This document shows, piece after piece, positions 21,249 through 31,074 of a stretch of 31,074 nt of DNA. Under the pieces are notes generated by a model. It saw only the letters and a list, made by a program, of their open reading frames with translations, did not search any database and was not told the origin of the DNA. Source of the stretch: Histomonas meleagridis 2922-C6/04-290x (Eukaryota; Protista; Parabasalia); the NCBI GenBank assembly GCA_020184695.1, contig JAANOX010000174.1, positions 1 to 31,074 of the forward strand, in the 5' to 3' direction. How positions within the stretch are numbered: the first letter of the stretch is position 1; each line of letters begins with the position of its first letter. The translations under genes and the position numbers were made by a program.

Positions 21249-21602
21249 ATGTGTACTTTGCAAAAATATTTTATTATTTTTAAATCATAGAAATATAATT
21301 TTATGTATCAACTAAACCTATTTAATATAACTTATTATAAAAGTATAAAAAAATTCAAATATGATATACAATATTTGTTTTAAAAATAATATCAGAAAAT
21401 TGCAAGTGCATTAAGATAAATAAATTTAAAAATCAACATAATTAAAATTTTAATCATAATTTTTAATATATCAAAAAATTCATTGGAATAAAAATGCGTT
21501 ATTAACAAAAAAAATTATTGTTAAAATTCATAAATAAAATGATTTTAAAAAATGATAATTAAAATAATTATTATATAATAATTATTTAAATATCTACAGG
21601 CT

Positions 21603-21676
21603 TCCTCCCTAACTCAGTTGGTTAGAGTGTCAGACTGTTAATCTGGAAGTCGTGTGTTCGAGCCACACGGGAGGAG
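21603..21676 (+). tRNA. tRNA-Asn (anticodon GTT), intact
   Basis: Full cloverleaf: acceptor TCCTCCC/GGGAGGA, D arm ACTC/GAGT, anticodon arm TCAGA-CTGTTAA-TCTGG, T arm GTGTG-TTCGAGC-CACAC, discriminator G. Confidence 0.97.
21663..21676 (+). repeat. Target-site duplication copy 1 (tRNA 3' end, CCACACGGGAGGAG)
   Basis: Exact 14-mer repeated at 24345 and 26971. The following A is also shared, so the repeat is 14-15 nt. Confidence 0.92.
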
Positions 21677-21677
21677 A

Positions 21678-24288
21678 ATGAATTTTTTTACACAGTCATT
21701 TTTACACGCTGAAAATCGAAAATATGATTCAAGACCATCTACACAACAAGATAATATACTTTTTGATCAAAACATAGCAAATTCTTCGAAATGCATACCT
21801 AATTATTTACCACAATTCATTAAGTCTACCCCTTTGCCACACTATACTCAGCCATTACTCATTAATCATATGCTTAATGTCTCAGGATTACCCTCAGGAG
21901 TCGAGATAGAAGAACAAAGATTTTACCCTTTTCGGTCCATCGACCATGGCCGTCCTTTTCAATACGAAATCCTACTTTTAAAAAATCTACATTATCGTCC
22001 TGACAAATGGTACCCATTTAATGTTGGCAACAAACCATTACCTTCATCAATTATAATTAGTGCTGACCCGAATATTAGTGTCTATTTACCTGTTTATATT
22101 TCAAATCTAGATTGCTTAATTATTCAGAGAGGTCATTGTATTATTGATCAAGATAAATGTCTTAGATTAGATGCTAGTTTAGAACCATTCAAACTTACAC
22201 AATATGAAATTGATAATAATGTTATAAATCTTAATCTTTTCTTTAACCAAAATTTATTATATTATAAGAATTTTCAACCAGTTAACATTTTTAATCATAA
22301 AACGAAATATTATAGAAGCATTGCTAAATTTTATATTACTTATTCAAATATTATTATTAATTTAAGTGAAGATTATGATTTTATTTCTAAAATCATTAAT
22401 GTTTCAAGACTTTTGATTGATTATTTACATGGTTTGAAATATAACTCAAGATATTTATTTGATACACATGATTCGATTAAATATACAATTAGTTCAAACA
22501 TGAATATTGAATCTTTCCGAGAAATATTTGCTAATACACCCAATTTATTTGAGAATATTGATGAGGAAATTAAAGATATTTTTAATAACGAACATGTGAA
22601 CCTTAAACAAAAGAATCTTGCTGTAATCAAGATGATTAATGAAAGACAAACTGAAAAGACGTATTCATCGTTTTTATATGAAAGAGATGTTCTTGGGTCT
22701 TTTACATCTAATGAATCAATATCTTTCTTAATTTCTTTATATCTACAATGCTACTTGACAGTAAGGTCGCAGTTCAATAGTTCTTTAGATATTAAGGACA
22801 ATGATGAGCATAAAGATCTGGAGTCTAATAAAGCAGAGATTAAAGAAAATCAAAAATGAAAGTTAATGAAAATTCTGATGAGAATCATATGATAAATAAT
22901 ATTGATGATAATAATGATAACGACAATGAAATTACAAATATTAAAAAAATTTGACTGATATGTTAAAATGTTTCAATATTATAATTAATTATCAAAACTT
23001 CAAATCTCATAATATATTATTCACTTTTAACTTACTTAATTCATTAACTTATCATTATCAACACCCGGAAAGTTATTGTTTCTTATTTACTGATGACGGC
23101 GTGGCTAGAGTTAAATTAAAAGAGAAGTTAATATTAGTTAAGGATCTGGATGCCTTTATTAATATATTCGATCTTGATCCAGATCCTTTAACTAATAATT
23201 TTATTGATTATTCGATTCAAGCTTTTAATCATATGTTGAATTCGAAGTATTTAATAATAATTAATTCAAAATATATGAAATTGTTTAACATTAAAAGGAA
23301 TATTTGGTTATCATTAATTCTACATATTACTTATAGAAGGAACAAAAAACCCCTTAAGCCTTCAGGTAATTGTAGATTTAGTAAATCATTATTCTATTTG
23401 ATATTAGACAATTTCATCGCTTTACCTCAATTATTATTATATACTTTATTAAATAATTCACTTCTCGACATATCAATTCTTCAGACAATTCGAATTGGAA
23501 ATATAATTATATTAGGAATTAACTTTATAACATCAATTATCCCTTATTTCTTATCTATACTATTTTACTCACTTATAAAATTGTTCAATTTATTAGTTTT
23601 TTTAATAAGCATTTATTTTATTCAATCTTCAAAGCTGTTTACCATTCTTAAACATAGTAACATTTTGGTTTCATCAAATATGATCAGAAGGAACAAAAAA
23701 CCCTATCAGCCTTCGCGTATTTGTAAATCAAACAACTTCTTTGTTTTAGATCTCATTAATTTGAAGATTTTAACAATTCTTAATCTTAATCTCAATCTCA
23801 ATCTTAATAGTTTATTATTATTGCTCATGGAAATTTATATTTTTTTAGATAAGAACATATTGTATATTTATTTGATGTATTCAAATGTAAGTGTAACAAG
23901 GAATAAATTATCAACAGAAAGTATTAATAAATATTTAAAACGAAGAAATATTTTGATTGTACTCGGAACGATCAGAAGGAACAAAAACCCTTATCAGCCT
24001 TCGCGTCTCCGCTCGTCAAACATTTTCTTTAATTTAAATATTTTATTAATTTCAGTATTGAGAAATTTGGAAACAAAGAAGATTGAAGATGAATTTGGTT
24101 CCGTTGGCTACACAGGTCTCGTTTTGCGACATAAGTTAATCCCTTTATTTTGTTCAGTCCTTAATTGGTACAATATGTTCAATATGTTCAGTGGGTTCAC
24201 TAGGTTCAGTAAGTTCATGATGCCAGTTTCCAATTGGATTGTTGGCCCCTTCCGTTGGCAACAAATCCTCAAGGTTCACACATTTTGA
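21678..24288 (+). CDS. Short-element protein (~869 aa after correcting two homopolymer indels)
   Basis: ORFs 21678-22859 and 22951-24288 are joined by a frame that is open across the same region in copy 2. The breaks lie in A-runs at ~22850 and ~22945. Confidence 0.72.
21683..21689 (+). terminator. T7 run: probable Pol III terminator for tRNA-Asn, located inside the element 5' end
   Basis: TTTTTTT begins 7 nt after the discriminator base and overlaps codons 2-5 of the element ORF (M-N-F-F-T). Confidence 0.75.
23335..24006 (+). repeat. Three dispersed ~29-37-nt internal repeats (AGAAGGAACAAAAA..CC.TA..AGCCTTC; peptide RRNK[K/N]PxxPS)
   Basis: Copies at 23335-23363, 23682-23718 and 23970-24006; the last two match at 35/37 nt. 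Also present in copy 2 at 25958-25986, 26305-26341 and 26594-26630. Confidence 0.88.
23779..23808 (+). repeat. (CTYAAT)5 hexamer repeat encoding (LN)5
   Basis: cttaatcttaatctcaatctcaatcttaat; also at 26402-26431. Confidence 0.8.
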
Positions 24289-24344
24289 TTTTAATTCCTT
24301 TTGATCTTTAAAACACCTAATTATAATGATATTTAATGAATAAA

Positions 24345-24358
24345 CCACACGGGAGGAG
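24345..24358 (+). repeat. Target-site duplication copy 2 (tRNA 3' fragment)
   Basis: CCACACGGGAGGAG, exact. Confidence 0.92.
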
Positions 24359-26970
24359 AATGAATTTTTTTACACAGTCATTTTTACACGCTGAAAATCG
24401 AAAATATGATTCAAGACCATCTACACAACAAGATAATATACTTTTTGATCAAAACATAGCAAATTCTTCGAAATGCATACCTAATTATTTACCACAATTC
24501 ATTAAGTCTACCCCTTTGCCACACTATACTCAGCCATTACTCATTAATCATATGCTTAATGTCTCAGGATTACCCTCAGGAGTCGAGATAGAAGAACAAA
24601 GATTTTACCCTTTTCGGTCCATCGACCATGGCCGTCCTTTTCAATACGAAATCCTACTTTTAAAAGGTTTACATTATCGTCCTGACAAATGGTACCCATT
24701 TAATGTTGATAACAAACCATTACCTTCATCAATTATAATTAGTGCTGACCCGAATATTAGTGTCTATTTACCTGTTTATATTTCAAATCTAGATTGCTTA
24801 ATTATTCAGAGAGGTCATTGTATTATTGATCAAGATAAATGTCTTAGATTAGATGTTAGTTTAGAACCATTCAAACTTACACAATATGAAATTGATAATA
24901 ATGTTATAAATCTTAATCTTTTCTTTAACCAAAATTTATTATATTATAAGAATTTTCAACATTCAAATATTATTATTAATTTAAGTGAAGATTATGATTT
25001 TTATTTCTAAAATCATTAATGTTTCAAGACTTTTGATTGATTATTTACATGGTTTGAAATATAACTCAAGATATTTATTTGATACACATGATTCGATTAA
25101 ATATACAATTAGTTCAAACATGAATATTGAATCTTTCCGAGAAATATTTGCTAATACACCCAAATTTATTTGAGAATATTGATGAGGAAATTAAAGATAT
25201 TTTTAATAACGAACATGTGAACCTTAAACAAAAGAATCTTGCTGTAATCAAGATGATTAATGAAAGACAAACTGAAAAGACTTATTCATCGTTTTTATAT
25301 GAAAGAGATGTTCTTGGGTCTTTTACATCTAATGAATCAATATCTTTCTTAATTTCTTTATATCTACAATGCTACTTGACAGTAAGGTCGCAGTTCAATA
25401 GTTCTTTAGATATTAAGGACAATGATGAGCATAAAGATCTGGAGTCTAATAAAGCAGAGATTAAAAAAAAAAAAAAAATGAAAGTTAATGAAAATTCTGA
25501 TGAGAATCATATGATAAATAATATTAATGACAATAATAATTATAACGACAATGAAATTACAAATATTAAAAATTTGACTGATATGTTAAAATGTTTCAAT
25601 ATTATAATTAATTATCAAAACTTCAAATCTCATAATATATTATTCACTTTTAACTTACTTAATTCATTAACTTATCATTATCAACACCCGGAAAGTTATT
25701 GTTTCTTATTTACTGATGACGGCGTGGCTAGAGTTAAATTAAAAAAGAAGTTAATATTAGTTAAGGATCTGGATGCCTTTATTAATATATTCGATCTTGA
25801 TCCAGATCCTTTAACTAATAATTTTATTGATTATTCGATTCAAGCTTTTAATCATATGTTGAATTCGAAGTATTTAATAATAATTAATTCAAAATATATG
25901 AAATTGTTTAACATTAAAAGGAATATTTGGTTATCATTAATTCTACATATTACTTATAGAAGGAACAAAAAACCCCTTAAGCCTTCAGGTAATTGTAGAT
26001 TTAGTAAATCATTATTCTATTTGATATTAGACAATTTCATCGCTTTACCTCAATTATTATTATATACTTTATTAAATAATTCACTTCTCGACATATCAAT
26101 TCTTCAGACAATTCGAATTGGAAATATAATTATCTTAGGAATTAACTTTATAACATCAATTATCCCTTATTTCTTATCTATACTATTTTACTCACTTATA
26201 AAATTGTTCAATTTATTAGTTTCTTTAATAAGCATTTATTTTATTCAATCTTCAAAGCTGTTTACCATTCTTAAACATAGTAACATTTTGGTTTCATCAA
26301 ATATGATCAGAAGGAACAAAAAACCCTATCAGCCTTCGCGTATTTGTAAATCAAACAACTTCTTTGTTTTAGATCTCATTAATTTGAAGATTTTAACAAT
26401 TCTTAATCTTAATCTCAATCTCAATCTTAATAGTTTATTATTATTGCTTATTGAAATTTATATATTTTTAGATAAGAACATATTGTATATTTATTTGATG
26501 TATTCAAATGTAAGTGTAACAAGGAATAAATTATCAACAGAAAGTATTAATAAATATTTAAAACGAAGAAATATTTTTGATTGTACTCGGAATGATCAGA
26601 AGTAACAAAAACCCTTATCAGCCTTCGCGTCTCCGCTCGTCAAACATTTTTCTTTAATTTAAATATTTTTATTAATTACAGTATTTAGAAATTTGGAAAC
26701 GAAGAAGATTGAAGATGATTTTGGTTCCGTTGGCTACACAGGTCTCGTTTTGCGACATAAGTTAATCCCTTTATTTTGTTCAGTCCTTAATTGGTACAAT
26801 ATGTTCAATATGTTCAGTGGGTTCACTAGGTTCAGTAAGTTCATGATGCCAGTTTCCAATTGGATTGTTGGCCCCTTCCGTTGGCAACAAATCCTCAAGG
26901 TTCACACATTTTGATTTTAATTCCTTTTGATCTTTAAAACACCTAATTATGATGATATTTAATGAATAAA
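24359..26970 (+). mobile_element. Short (2612 bp) tRNA-Asn-inserted element, copy 2
   Basis: Same termini as copy 1. Differs by scattered substitutions, an in-frame 63-nt deletion (copy 1 22279-22341), an in-frame 3-nt insertion and homopolymer indels. Confidence 0.8.
24360..26914 (+). CDS. Short-element protein, copy 2 (~849 aa after correcting five +1 homopolymer insertions)
   Basis: ORF pieces 24360-25010, 24985-25173, 25127-26605 and 26693-26914 are collinear with copy 1. Every break is an extra T or A in a homopolymer run. Confidence 0.68.
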
Positions 26971-26984
26971 CCACACGGGAGGAG
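26971..26984 (+). repeat. Target-site duplication copy 3 (tRNA 3' fragment)
   Basis: CCACACGGGAGGAG, exact. Confidence 0.92.
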
Positions 26985-26985
26985 A

Positions 26986-26992
26986 TTTTTTT
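26986..26992 (+). terminator. T7 run immediately after the third tRNA 3' fragment
   Basis: GGAG-A-TTTTTTT-GATTTTTC-ATG. It is either the long element's 5' end or the tRNA's original terminator. Confidence 0.55.
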
Positions 26993-27000
26993 GATTTTTC

Positions 27001-30000
27001 ATGAATATTGATTTTTTGCGTCCGAGAACCCGATTTTCGGAAATAACTCCCCCAGGGCACTCGATTGATACCAGTTTTGTTCGGTCGGAAAAAAATTATC
27101 AGATAAATATATTGCGGAAAAAATCCGACACTACTCATGAAATAACGGCACAAGACCACAGGATAGAACCGATTATTGAAGAGGAAGCCCCAGACCTCGA
27201 ACAAAAAGAAAATGATGAAGATTTTGTTCTTGAGATTAATCAAGAACTTCCATTTCAACAAGAAATTTTATTAATACGAGGTCGTCATTACCACCCAACA
27301 CCAACAAGCCCAGAAGGAACACCATTACCTCCACCACCAAATTGGGTGATTATTTCATCAGATATTAATATTCTCAGATTTTTACCTATACAATGTAATG
27401 ACTCAAATGGGGCTATTCTAGCACGAGGACAAGCTATTATTCAACATGATATATTAAGAATTAATACCCACAATCCTCCCATTCCTACAACGATAGAGGA
27501 ATTTGACAGAGGTCTACTCGATTTACGTCCTATTATAGGACCAAACAGACTTAGAGAATCCCCGTTTAGATTATTTTGGGAATGATGAACAGATTTCTCA
27601 CATTAGGAATGAAGCTCAGATCATTGTGTATAATATTCTTAATCAACAACAGATAAATATTAATTCTTCTAATAATACTTGGAATTTATTACAAATTAAT
27701 TGCAATTATGATTTTTCGAATAACTTTATAAACTCATGTTCACCAGTTCAAAACAATACCAAAATTGGTTTTATTGCATTTGGTCAAGATAACAGATCAA
27801 TTAATCAAAATAATGCAACTTTTAATTTTACTAATTCACCATTTGTTGAAGAAACAGAAGATATTCAAGCTCAGGCTATTACTTATGATTTGGATTCAGA
27901 AGAACCTTCATTTGAACCCGAACTCGAATTTCCAACAATAAATTCTGATTCTCAAGATTTTCAAGTTACTCCATCCTTTAATCCCGGAAATATCACAACT
28001 GAATCAGATTCATTAGAAGTTATACCTAAGAGAAACATTTTTAACTGCTAGTCCTAGAATTGATAAATTACATATCAGCAAAGTTAATAACATTATAACA
28101 GAAGATGCTCAAATAGATAACTTAATAAATAAACCAATTATTAATACTATTACTTCCAACCCGATTAATGAAGAACATAAAGTAATACCTATTAACAAAA
28201 CTATAATTTCTGAACCAATTAATGAAGAACACAAAGTTGAACCATTAAATAAAACTATAATTTCTAATCCAATAAAGGAAAAACAAAAGGTTGAACCAAT
28301 TAATATAACTAAAACTTCTAAACCTTTGGTAGAAAGTCATATTAATGAACCGGTTTATACAACTAAAAACTTCAAATCCTATATCTGAAAGTCATGTTGT
28401 TATACCAGAGTATCAAAACGTTACTTCAACCCCAACTGTTCTTTCTCACGATATCAAAGTTATTGAAGGTTGTAAAACTTCAGTAGCTAATGTTGAAAGT
28501 TTAAAAGTTACTGTTAATGAAGTGGATTTAACTTATGATGCTGAAATTCCTCAAATGAAAATCAATATTATCAAAGAAACTAAAACAATAGATGTTATAG
28601 TCCCAATTTTGGAATTTAATTATATCAGTGTTCCAAAATTTTTTTTACCAATTACTAATTTATCTACTTTTTCTTCAGATGATTCAACTTACAATGCTTT
28701 AGATACTTATTCAGATGATAATGTTAATCATATCACTTCTACTGATACTTCAAATAATGATCCATCAAATAATCCTTCTTTTTCCTGATCCTTCTGATTC
28801 AGAGGGTTCAGATGATTCAGATTCCGGAATTGATGATATTAGTGATTTATTACCAGATGATATTATTTATAATAAATTAATTAGTGACTTAAAACTTTGT
28901 AGATTACCTGATGATATTAAAGATTTTATTAATAAATGGAAGAATTTAAATAACTTAAATTGTTGGAAACATGAAGATATTAATTTAGCTAAACAACCAT
29001 TAATTCATATTATGATTAGAGAAAATAAAATGGTGTGCACCAGGTCAATTCCCTTGTCAATGTGAATGTTATAAATTAACTAAATCAGGTAATGATTTGA
29101 TTAGTCATATGACTAAAGTTCATAATCATAAACCTGATCAAAATCATTTATATGGTTGCATTAAATATTTAATCAATAATGATTTATATTGGAAATTAAT
29201 TTATGAAGAAGATAAACCTGAGTGTTATCGAAATAATGTTTACGTTTGTCCAATACCTAATTGTAAATATTTTTTTCAAATACAAATAAATCCCTTTTTC
29301 TCTCATATTACTTATTCTCATAAAGATTTTTGAGAAAAATGAAGAATTCTATTGGTTGGTTTTTGGTCTACAATGTTACAATATGTTAATACTTACGACA
29401 AAAATTCCTTCATGTTTAGATATAATTAAACTTAAAGAAGGTTTTTGTTTGTAAATATTGTGAAACATATTGGACTTCTGATTCTAAAGGTTTACATAAT
29501 CATTGTAAAAAAAGAATCATGCATTAAATACTATTGAAGGTACAAATTTACCTTATTATAGAATTAAATGTTGTCCTTTAATGTATTTAAATTTTTAATG
29601 AAACAGAATTAGAAGTAATTAAAAAAGATATCAAAGATTATGAAGATAAAGTGTTTATGAGTAGAACAATCACAGAAAGAGAAAGATTAGCGGTCAGAGA
29701 AATTCCTTTCATTTTAAATAATGAACAAACAAATGCTATGGAACAAAGACAAAGAAGAGAAGAAAATGACCGTATTAATTTAAATAGAGATTTACAATTA
29801 CAAGCAATTCAAAATTCCCGAACATTAAATTTAACTCCTCCAGATCAAATACATCCCCCAGTAAATTTAAATTTAATTAATAATGAATTTGATTTAAATA
29901 AAATTAAAAATTTAAATAGAGACCAATTATTAATTTTAGCTAGAAAATGGACTTCTGATAATCAAGAACAAGAATCTCAATTTATATCATTACCTAAAAC

Positions 30001-31074
30001 TTGGGGTAAAAATAATAAATTTAAAAATTAGAGCTAAATTACCAGATTTATTTAAATATAAAATCGAACCTTTAATAGAAATTTGTAAACCTCAAGATTA
30101 TAATAATTGTAATGATGAAGATTTTTATATTTGGGAAGGTTGCCTTTCTAAAATTAATATGTTAATTCGTGATGAATTAAGAGATATTTTAAAAATTCCG
30201 TTGAATAAAATGTTAAACAGAAGGAACACAGTAGTCACTAGCACAGAAGATAGAATAGATCTTCGTAACAAAGAAATGGAGACACATAATTTATGTAAAA
30301 TTACGTTTTGGTTAAACAAATTTAAAGATTTATATCATAAGCCTCAATCTCAATTTATTCTTAATACAATGTCTAAACTTCAAGAAAAGATTATTAAAAA
30401 CCATCAATTTCCTCCCGGATGAAATAAAATCTATTCTTGAAATTAATGAGCCTCAAGATATTATAAATCTAATACAATCAGCGGAAGACTATTATGAAAA
30501 TAAAATCAAATTCATTGATGCTAAAATTAAAGAAAATCAAGTTAGTAATAATAATAAAAAAAATCAAAACTATAAAGGTTTAGTACAAAATCTTTACATG
30601 GAAGATCCTAGTAGATGTTTACGTTGGTTTATCACTAATAATACGACTCCTGAATGTAAGTTAAATCCTGAAGATTTTTATGATGGAATATGGTAATAAT
30701 TGGAGTCAAGAAAAAAATTTATTAATGACTCCCAGGAATTTGATTTTTAAAGATATTATTAACCCTAATAGTAATGAATTATTATTAAATTATATTTTTT
30801 TGATGATGATAATATTAAACATGCAATTTTTCTAGATCTAATGCGGCTGCTTATGGTCCCGATGGTATTTCTAATTATATTTGGAAATTAGGAGATACTA
30901 CTACTATTAAATTAATTAAAATTACTACTAAAATTACTATGTTAACTAAAAAATGTCCTGAATTATTTAAATTAAGTAAAACAATTATGTTATACAAAAA
31001 AGGTGATGCTCAAAATCCTCATTCTTGGAGACCTATTTCTATTACTCCTACTTTTTATCGTATTTGGATGGTAT
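27001..31074 (+). CDS. Retrotransposon polyprotein (shared N-terminal domain, low-complexity and repeat region, 3x C2H2, start of RT); many single-base frameshifts; 3'-partial
   Basis: All fragments are on + and reconnect across homopolymer indels (e.g. RLF|GNDEQISH at ~27575, TK|TSNP at ~28368). The RT-containing last frame is missing from the supplied ORF track. Confidence 0.8.
28134..28404 (+). repeat. Five tandem 54-nt (18-aa) repeats inside the polyprotein
   Basis: PIINTITSNPINEEHKVI / PINKTIISEPINEEHKVE / PLNKTIISNPIKEKQKVE / PINITKTSKPLVESHINE / PVYTTKTSNPISESHVVI. Confidence 0.85.
29055..29520 (+). other. Three C2H2 zinc fingers of the retrotransposon protein
   Basis: CQCECYKLTKSGNDLISHMTKVH (29055-29123), CPIPNCKYFF...SHITYSH (29247-29321) and CKYCETYWTSDSKGLHNHCKK.H (29450-29520). 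Confidence 0.82.

Follow-up and report, generated by a model that had tools for sequence, protein, structure and literature searches.

A head-to-tail stack of R2-like retrotransposons probably specific for tRNA-Asn genes in Histomonas meleagridis

In the parabasalid Histomonas meleagridis 2922-C6/04-290x, an intact tRNA-Asn(GTT) gene is followed on its own strand by three insertions, and the last 14 nucleotides (nt) of the gene recur at the junctions between them. What kind of element has accumulated here, how does it enter the gene, and is this site the only one that it uses? The window that we analysed is a whole contig of the assembly (JAANOX010000174.1, 31,074 nt; contig C174 of genome G000), and the last insertion is cut off at its end. 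Our answer, to which we assign a probability of roughly 90%, is that the locus holds a head-to-tail stack of retrotransposons lacking long terminal repeats (non-LTR elements) that bear a restriction-like endonuclease (RLE), have the build of the R2 group, and integrate only into tRNA-Asn(GTT) genes through target-primed reverse transcription (TPRT). The architecture predicted from the sequences is that of the R2 group: one open reading frame (ORF) of ~2100 aa with N-terminal C2H2 fingers, a reverse transcriptase (RT), a CCHC motif and a PD-(D/E)xK nuclease.

The tRNA-Asn gene and its three insertions

In the window the 14-mer CCACACGGGAGGAG has exactly three occurrences, which start at 21663, 24345 and 26971 and all lie on the forward strand, while 100 shuffles gave an expectation of 0. 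It corresponds to nt 60-73 of the tRNA, that is, the last base of the T-loop, the 3' strands of the T-stem and the acceptor stem, and the discriminator. Downstream of the tRNA lie, all on the same strand, two copies of an element that we call SHORT and one copy of an element that we call LONG, the latter recognised by its similarity to P0001, the protein of a metagenomic relative described below. Short-read contigs from other runs span the tRNA-to-SHORT junction and one SHORT-to-SHORT junction. The features are as follows.

21603-21676, + strand: intact tRNA-Asn(GTT) gene, the target (Rfam tRNA, 61.7 bits; the sole ARAGORN tRNA-Asn(GTT) call, at 21602-21677)
21663-21676, + strand: target-site copy 1, exact 14-mer inside the tRNA
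21677-24344, + strand: SHORT copy 1, 2668 bp, no RT or endonuclease; starts A-ATG-AAT-T7, ends AATGAATAAA
21678-22859, + strand: ORF1 of SHORT copy 1, 393 aa
22951-24288, + strand: ORF2 of SHORT copy 1, 445 aa, first ATG at 22960
24345-24358, + strand: target-site copy 2, exact 14-mer
24359-26970, + strand: SHORT copy 2, 96% identical to copy 1; ORF1 broken by indels, ORF2 open
26971-26984, + strand: target-site copy 3, exact 14-mer
26985-31074, + strand: LONG, the 5' 4,090 bp of a ~6.4-kb autonomous element of subfamily 'w3', from a same-order tblastn match to P0001
27214-27582, + strand: conserved N-terminal domain of ~120 aa (EILL..G.HYNP...P.W.IIS.DP...RGQ), from alignment
29055-29129, 29247-29321 and 29450-29524, + strand: three C2H2-like fingers, split across frames by frameshifts
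30831-31073, + strand: first part of the RT, motifs 0-1 (..PHSWRPISITPTFYR..), the rest lying past the contig end

Parsed by eye, the cloverleaf of the tRNA has the T-stem GTGTG/CACAC, the T-loop TTCGAGC, the acceptor stem TCCTCCC/GGGAGGA and a discriminator G at 21676, and the gene equals the 14 other tRNA-Asn genes of the genome, position 59 excepted. A G stands 5' of the 14-mer in the tRNA, whereas both junctions have an A there (the end of ..AATGAATAAA), which gives the repeat a sharp left edge. The first-pass annotation, a reading of the letters made before our analysis, had claimed an intact tRNA-Asn with three same-orientation inserts bounded by its last 14 nt; the exact matches, ARAGORN and Rfam bear this out, and the bases at the left edge read as it had stated.

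Insert 3 matches residues 2-1291 of P0001 in order, over at least eight frame segments (tblastn). A double T-run (26986-26999) at its 5' end is followed by a start codon at 27001, and at least seven copy-specific frameshifts interrupt the reading frame. Six further w3 copies, each behind another tRNA-Asn gene or a 14-mer, match this one at 97.5-98.9% identity; since the frameshifts fall at different places in different copies, the source copy must have had an open frame. The three fingers correspond to those at residues 628, 694 and 759 of P0001. That the third insert encodes C2H2 fingers and non-LTR RT motifs, as had been proposed, holds for the fingers, but only the first RT motifs lie within the window. 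The ~120-aa N-terminal domain is common to LONG, SHORT and distant relatives, and its AlphaFold model (pLDDT 73.6) showed no fold match in the PDB (Foldseek E >= 2.8; VIA Z <= 2.5) and no match in the Atlas. The first ~95 nt of the window LONG (26985-27079) are near-identical to another LONG subfamily (L006, on contig C181), the remainder being only ~60% identical, which suggests either a mosaic 5' end or strong constraint.

Inserts 1 and 2 are not truncated copies of insert 3; SHORT is an RT-less element of its own kind. It is presumably mobilised in trans by LONG, because it has the same termini and the same duplication but neither RT nor nuclease. Residues ~90-220 of its ORF1 share 28-34% identity with the N-terminal domain of LONG proteins, while ORF2 belongs to no Pfam family and has no homologue among 5.8 billion proteins. 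The SHORT copy behind the tRNA-Asn gene of C181 is 98.6% identical to window copy 1. Three direct repeats of ~70 nt, starting at 23331, 23682 and 23970 (23331-24039) and 290-350 bp apart, are found in copy 1; they have a GC-richer core, GAAGG-N18-CCTTC, that could form a small hairpin, and the motif is confined to SHORT copies. A second kind of non-autonomous derivative is the internally deleted LONG at C175:8500-11200 (L004), which is without ~3.8 kb of its middle and keeps both ends and the 14-mers.

Around the target itself, the motif CAG(G/A)CT stands directly 5' of all 15 tRNA-Asn genes of the genome (21596-21602 in the window), the flanks farther out being unrelated, and may be a start-site motif for RNA polymerase III (Pol III). 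Position 59 of the tRNA (21662 in the window), just 5' of the putative nick discussed below, is mostly G, with A in C6 and T in C156, C236 and C268; the differences may be normal variation of the T-loop or may have been left behind by integration or conversion, and the variants offer a natural tag for the expression of occupied tRNA-Asn genes. The remainder of the window (positions 1-21250) carries ordinary intron-free eukaryotic genes, among them those for a PTEN-like phosphatase, an Hsp70-like protein, a 14-3-3 protein, an OTU protease and a PAPS-reductase-like protein.

Complete copies, site specificity and relatives on other tRNAs

Copies elsewhere supply what the contig end removes. Contig C20 holds one full element of ~6.45 kb, from ..GGAG/ATTTTTTTGA.. 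to ..AATGAATAAA/CCACACGGGAG (the slash marking the junction), with a 1367-aa ORF that includes an RT (YADD), a CCHC motif (CPYCGQINSLRHRLNDC) and the nuclease signature KPD..IEVT..KDKY. Contig C49 overlaps the window at 29849-31074 with 97-98% identity and continues with YADD, CCHC and RPD..IEVT..KVDKY; its end overlaps C167, C38 and C30, which reach ..AATGAATAAA and the 14-mer. Finally, the metagenome contig L027 encodes P0001, an unbroken ORF of 2101 aa (70% identical) that begins 7 nt downstream of one 14-mer and has another behind it. The YADD, CCHC and PD-(D/E)xK endonuclease that the first-pass annotation expected beyond the contig end are thus present in these three sister copies rather than in the window.

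The RT was recognised as RVT_1 in a Pfam scan (E 1e-27 to 3e-32), the closest PDB sequence matches were R2 proteins (2e-50 for the RT), and the CCHC and RLE part matched avian R2 at E 6e-10, with KPD, (D/E)VT and K..KY aligned residue by residue. The Pfam scan of the full-length P0001, P0004 and P0005 gave no match to an AP endonuclease (Exo_endo_phos), to Ulp1/Peptidase_C48 or to an RNase H domain; there was also no Myb match in Pfam at E <= 1, although Pfam is insensitive for so short a motif. Between the C20 copy and the metagenomic P0001 the ratio of nonsynonymous to synonymous substitution rates (dN/dS) is 0.14. The ORF begins within 1-17 nt of the element 5' end, and conservation is seen in its opening residues, M-x-F-F..F-L..E-T-R-Y. 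The N-terminal third of LONG proteins contains 10-14 tandem repeats of 54 nt (18 aa; ..ES(L/V)xVNPK..), whose number varies between families; they were located at residues ~300-480 of P0001 and at L035 7409-8056, L036 8288-9289 and L037 4755-5584.

The distribution of the 14-mer over the genome argues for a specific target. Of its 25 exact occurrences, 12 belong to complete tRNA-Asn genes and the other 13 stand immediately behind an element 3' end, which reads ..AATGAATAAA or, in one subfamily, ..TAATAGAC. Ten of these 13 are followed by the 5' end of a further element, and the remaining three lead into T-run DNA that does not resemble the elements. When the genome was searched with the 5' half of the tRNA, 15 tRNA-Asn genes were recovered: four are cut by contig ends, one is empty, and the other ten are occupied (10 of 11 assessable), with an element 5' end directly after the tRNA in each. 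The empty gene, on C87, has an ordinary T-run flank and no protein similarity downstream. The upstream flanks of the 15 genes form 11 mutually unrelated groups, so that the occupied genes represent independent loci. All other complete element 5' ends in the loci examined stand after a 14-mer or a degenerate copy of it, the exceptions to the exact sequence being degenerate arrays with mutated 14-mers at C183 and C124. Insertion is therefore at a fixed junction in a repeated target; an integration guided by the Pol III complex, at a distance and with a variable target, does not describe these copies, which occupy one fixed position inside the gene.

These results agree with what had been foreseen from the window alone. 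Every 14-mer outside a tRNA (13/13) abuts an element 3' end, the predicted 14-mer followed by the original type of T-run flank was found at three junctions elsewhere in the genome, and empty and filled loci could be compared (one, C87, against ten). The tests set beforehand for a site-specific family, namely whether copies sit at unrelated sites, whether the 3' end lacks a 14-mer and whether the tRNA adjacency is unique to this locus, came out in favour of the family.

Several contigs of the assembly end within such arrays: C11, C38, C114 and C178 end in or just after a tRNA-Asn gene, and C6, C54, C58, C167, C174, C236 and C268 end ~3.7-4.1 kb into LONG. The 3' half of LONG seems to have been collapsed into the 3.4-kb contig C49. 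For annotators, the practical message is that tRNA-Asn arrays break assembly.

RT families of this genome that are less closely related (35-44% identity) stand directly behind other tRNA genes, again on the same strand: tRNA-Cys, tRNA-Arg(ACG), tRNA-Ile(GAT) at two loci, and tRNA-Lys(TTT). These sister loci are L021 (C280), L023 (C227), L024 (C269), L025 (C153) and L026 (C11). Their duplications, of 16 bp (Cys), 16 bp (Arg), 14 bp (Ile) and 15-17 bp (Lys), extend from position 58 or 60, in the T-loop, as far as the discriminator. Relatives with 36-42% identical proteins in metagenomes (ENA contigs) repeat the Asn junction, and a 14-15-nt version of it separates head-to-tail elements in L027, L035 and L036. 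Together with L037, these three contigs hold head-to-tail arrays with intact ORFs of 2100-2350 aa. LONG alternates with a 1.2-kb short element in L035; the joint of L036 is 15 nt, its left edge lying one base earlier and its right edge unmoved; and that of L037 is the 3' end of another tRNA (TTCCAGCAGCGCGGA). An RT tree covered the relatives from the genome and the metagenomes, with apurinic/apyrimidinic-endonuclease-type outgroups; the tRNA-Cys element, for which too little sequence had been matched, was left out. In this tree every element with a known Asn target belongs to a single clade (support 93/91), which also includes 10 rows without an assigned target and stands apart from an Ile clade and a Lys/Arg clade.

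Route of integration and competing explanations

TPRT by R2-type elements is established. Mechanistically, the bottom strand of the tRNA-Asn gene would be nicked in the T-loop/B-box between nt 59 and 60, as suggested by the 3' junction (..AATAAA/C60), and the nicked strand would prime cDNA synthesis at the 3' end of the element (..AATGAATAAA). The top strand would be opened 14 bp downstream, after discriminator nt 73 according to the 5' junction, or one base later, an ambiguity that exists because both element types start with A. The 14-bp stagger would then duplicate nt 60-73, with the upstream copy completing the tRNA. All elements begin with seven or eight T in a row, immediately or, in SHORT, after 7 nt, and the LONG types have a second T-run, like native tRNA flanks. 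This run could act as a Pol III terminator for an occupied gene that would retain its A and B boxes; with the tRNA rebuilt and a T-run behind it, transcription of the gene should thus still be possible, and it should go on serving as a target. Later insertions would enter next to the tRNA and push older units downstream, an order that the data suggest without proving; the proximal SHORT copy is in a better state than the distal one, which fits stacking towards the tRNA.

Two other routes were tried and rejected. For a duplication longer than 14 bp, a family-specific likeness between native flanks and element 5' ends was refuted by a score matrix, in which the likeness proved generic (two T-runs) and matched pairs scored no better than mismatched ones; in addition, SHORT and LONG differ right after the 14-mer. 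Integrase-type integration at the tRNA 3' end was discarded given that the element encodes an RT and a restriction-like nuclease and no integrase.

The repeated 14-mer might instead be carried on RNA, as the 5' leader of a tRNA co-transcript or as a 3' read-through tail annealing to the nicked target, both strands then being cut at nearly the same place. We regard this as unlikely, but it would explain why the right edge of the duplication is the mature tRNA end (the RNase Z site) in five tRNA species while the lengths (14, 14, 16, 16 and 15-17 bp) keep to no fixed distance, and why in L036 the left edge shifts by 1 nt and the right edge stays. The uniform, full-length 5' ends of the elements point the same way, and R2 likewise uses co-transcribed flanking 28S/rRNA sequence (background in PMC3414825). 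Against it, RLE elements commonly make cuts that are staggered by 10-20 bp, Rfam found no ribozyme or other known RNA family at the element 5' end, and the T-run directly after the tRNA means that a Pol III co-transcript is not possible. A related and bolder idea seems to us quite improbable: that the clade reads tRNA genes by structure-indexed positions (nick in the T-loop/B-box, 5' boundary at the discriminator) irrespective of the tRNA species, be it Asn, Cys, Arg, Ile or Lys in this genome or others in metagenomes, with RNase Z defining the 5' end of the element RNA from a tRNA-element co-transcript. If it were true, RNase Z would play the part that the hepatitis delta virus (HDV)-like ribozyme plays in R2, a switch of tRNA target would need only small changes in the finger region, and the clade would constitute a naturally occurring series of site-specific integrases, re-targeted and non-disruptive.

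Some arrays have clearly been remodelled by recombination, as the internally deleted and mosaic copies of the C175 and C183 arrays illustrate, and part of the stack in the window could also have been built in this way, through unequal crossing-over at SHORT copies or at 14-mers, through gene conversion or through segmental duplication. The window and C181 have 206 bp of upstream flank, the tRNA and one SHORT in common at 98.7%, yet C181 has only that one SHORT and a different LONG subfamily downstream, and the two LONG subfamilies agree in their first ~95 nt far better than in the rest (~60%). Nonetheless, we doubt that the window stack arose so: its two SHORT units differ by 4% and many indels, unlike a recent duplication, the tRNA-proximal one is more intact and closest to the C181 copy, as serial insertion predicts, and recombination cannot account for the independent occupation of at least eight loci with unrelated flanks. 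Far less credible is a mobile unit that includes the tRNA itself, either headed by it like a short interspersed element or of integrase type, with ends that share 14 nt, and that inserts anywhere. Such a unit would agree with an element behind nearly every tRNA-Asn gene and with CAGRCT just upstream of all 15; yet these upstream flanks are unrelated beyond 6-7 nt, internal array junctions hold the 14-mer alone and never a whole tRNA, and the empty tRNA-Asn with its ordinary T-run flank contradicts the idea. Furthermore, the enzymes encoded are an RT and a restriction-like nuclease, not an integrase, and the tRNA-Asn genes are the cell's only gene family for decoding Asn.

Some observations count against serial, site-specific TPRT into tRNA-Asn genes, or limit what may be claimed for it. 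The nick positions and their order are deduced from the junction pattern, which by itself would look the same for staggered nicks and for a target segment that travels with the RNA, and the tandem order in the window depends on assembly contigs. All copies examined in this genome are frameshifted or incomplete, the best being that of C20 with its 1367-aa ORF; current activity is therefore unproven here, and assembly errors and real decay look alike in such data. For the SHORT ORFs, dN/dS against a decayed copy is ~1.2, so that purifying selection cannot be demonstrated. Lastly, an isolated RT fragment of the Asn family of ~1 kb (L031, C54:32233-33221) has no tRNA or 14-mer within 4 kb and is a relic outside the usual context.

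Comparison with known systems

The closest published elements are those of Kojima & Jurka 2015: NeSL-1_TV of Trichomonas vaginalis, specific for tRNA-Pro, and the planarian LIN15_SM and LIN25_SM, specific for tRNA-Arg and tRNA-Glu (PMC4640811). Like the Asn family, all three are RLE-type, single-ORF non-LTR elements specific for a tRNA gene, and NeSL-type elements are the sole retrotransposon class listed for trichomonad genomes (PMC12289875). In comparison with NeSL-1_TV, made by published description rather than by sequence, the target here is Asn. The present genome further differs from that group in having at least five sister families on other tRNAs, a protein about twice as long (2100-2390 aa) with an orphan N-terminal domain, and an RT-less partner element. 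Utopia and NeSL elements also live inside multicopy small-RNA genes and combine one to three N-terminal fingers with RT, a zinc finger and RLE. Their targets, however, are U2 small nuclear RNA (snRNA) or spliced-leader genes, and the Asn family is without Ulp1 and RNase H by Pfam; Ulp1 protease is itself not universal in the NeSL clade (PMC4640811).

With R2 (R2Bm and avian R2Tg) the Asn family shares the N-terminal C2H2 fingers, the single ORF, the lack of a poly(A) tail and the precise 3' junction. It also resembles R2 SIDEs, internally deleted or non-autonomous derivatives that occur head-to-tail (PMC3414825), in having such derivatives in head-to-tail arrays of its own. In contrast, the target is tRNA-Asn and not 28S, so the family is not R2 in the strict sense of a 28S insertion, and R2 has not been found outside animals (PMC5035012). 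Whereas R2 inactivates its target, the 14-bp duplication of the Asn family rebuilds it. No Myb domain was detected by Pfam and no HDV-like ribozyme by Rfam: a scan of 21300-31074 at E <= 1 returned only the tRNA and a chance match resembling a small nucleolar RNA, although a divergent ribozyme could escape such a scan.

Dictyostelium TRE5/TRE3 and yeast Ty1/Ty3 likewise use tRNA genes as safe havens in a gene-dense genome, but they integrate at a distance, upstream or downstream, via the Pol III machinery, with an AP endonuclease or an integrase, while the Asn family enters the gene at one nucleotide position with a sequence-specific restriction-like nuclease. Dada elements share the sequence-specific insertion inside small-RNA genes (tRNA or snRNA); they are DNA transposons with a transposase, whereas the Asn family has RT and RLE and no transposase.

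The first-pass annotation had known of no tRNA-Asn-specific family in parabasalids. Our literature searches turned up neither an Asn-specific family nor a multi-tRNA radiation, and recent R2 reviews are silent on tRNA targets; the Asn target thus seems unreported, but a tRNA-specific RLE element of a parabasalid has been published (NeSL-1_TV, PMC4640811). Taken globally, both the mechanism and the kind of element are already known. What looks new is the Asn target, the near-saturation of one tRNA gene family, a geometry shared across at least five tRNAs, an orphan N-terminal domain and a partner element that lacks an RT. Insertion of this sort is non-disruptive, the gene sequence staying complete, and it has reached 10 of the 11 assessable genes in a cell that must still decode Asn. 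The genome and the gut-type metagenomes together offer a natural series of R2-like enzymes that differ in their tRNA targets but share their cutting geometry, a series suited to learning how the nuclease chooses its site and relevant to gene-insertion tools based on R2.

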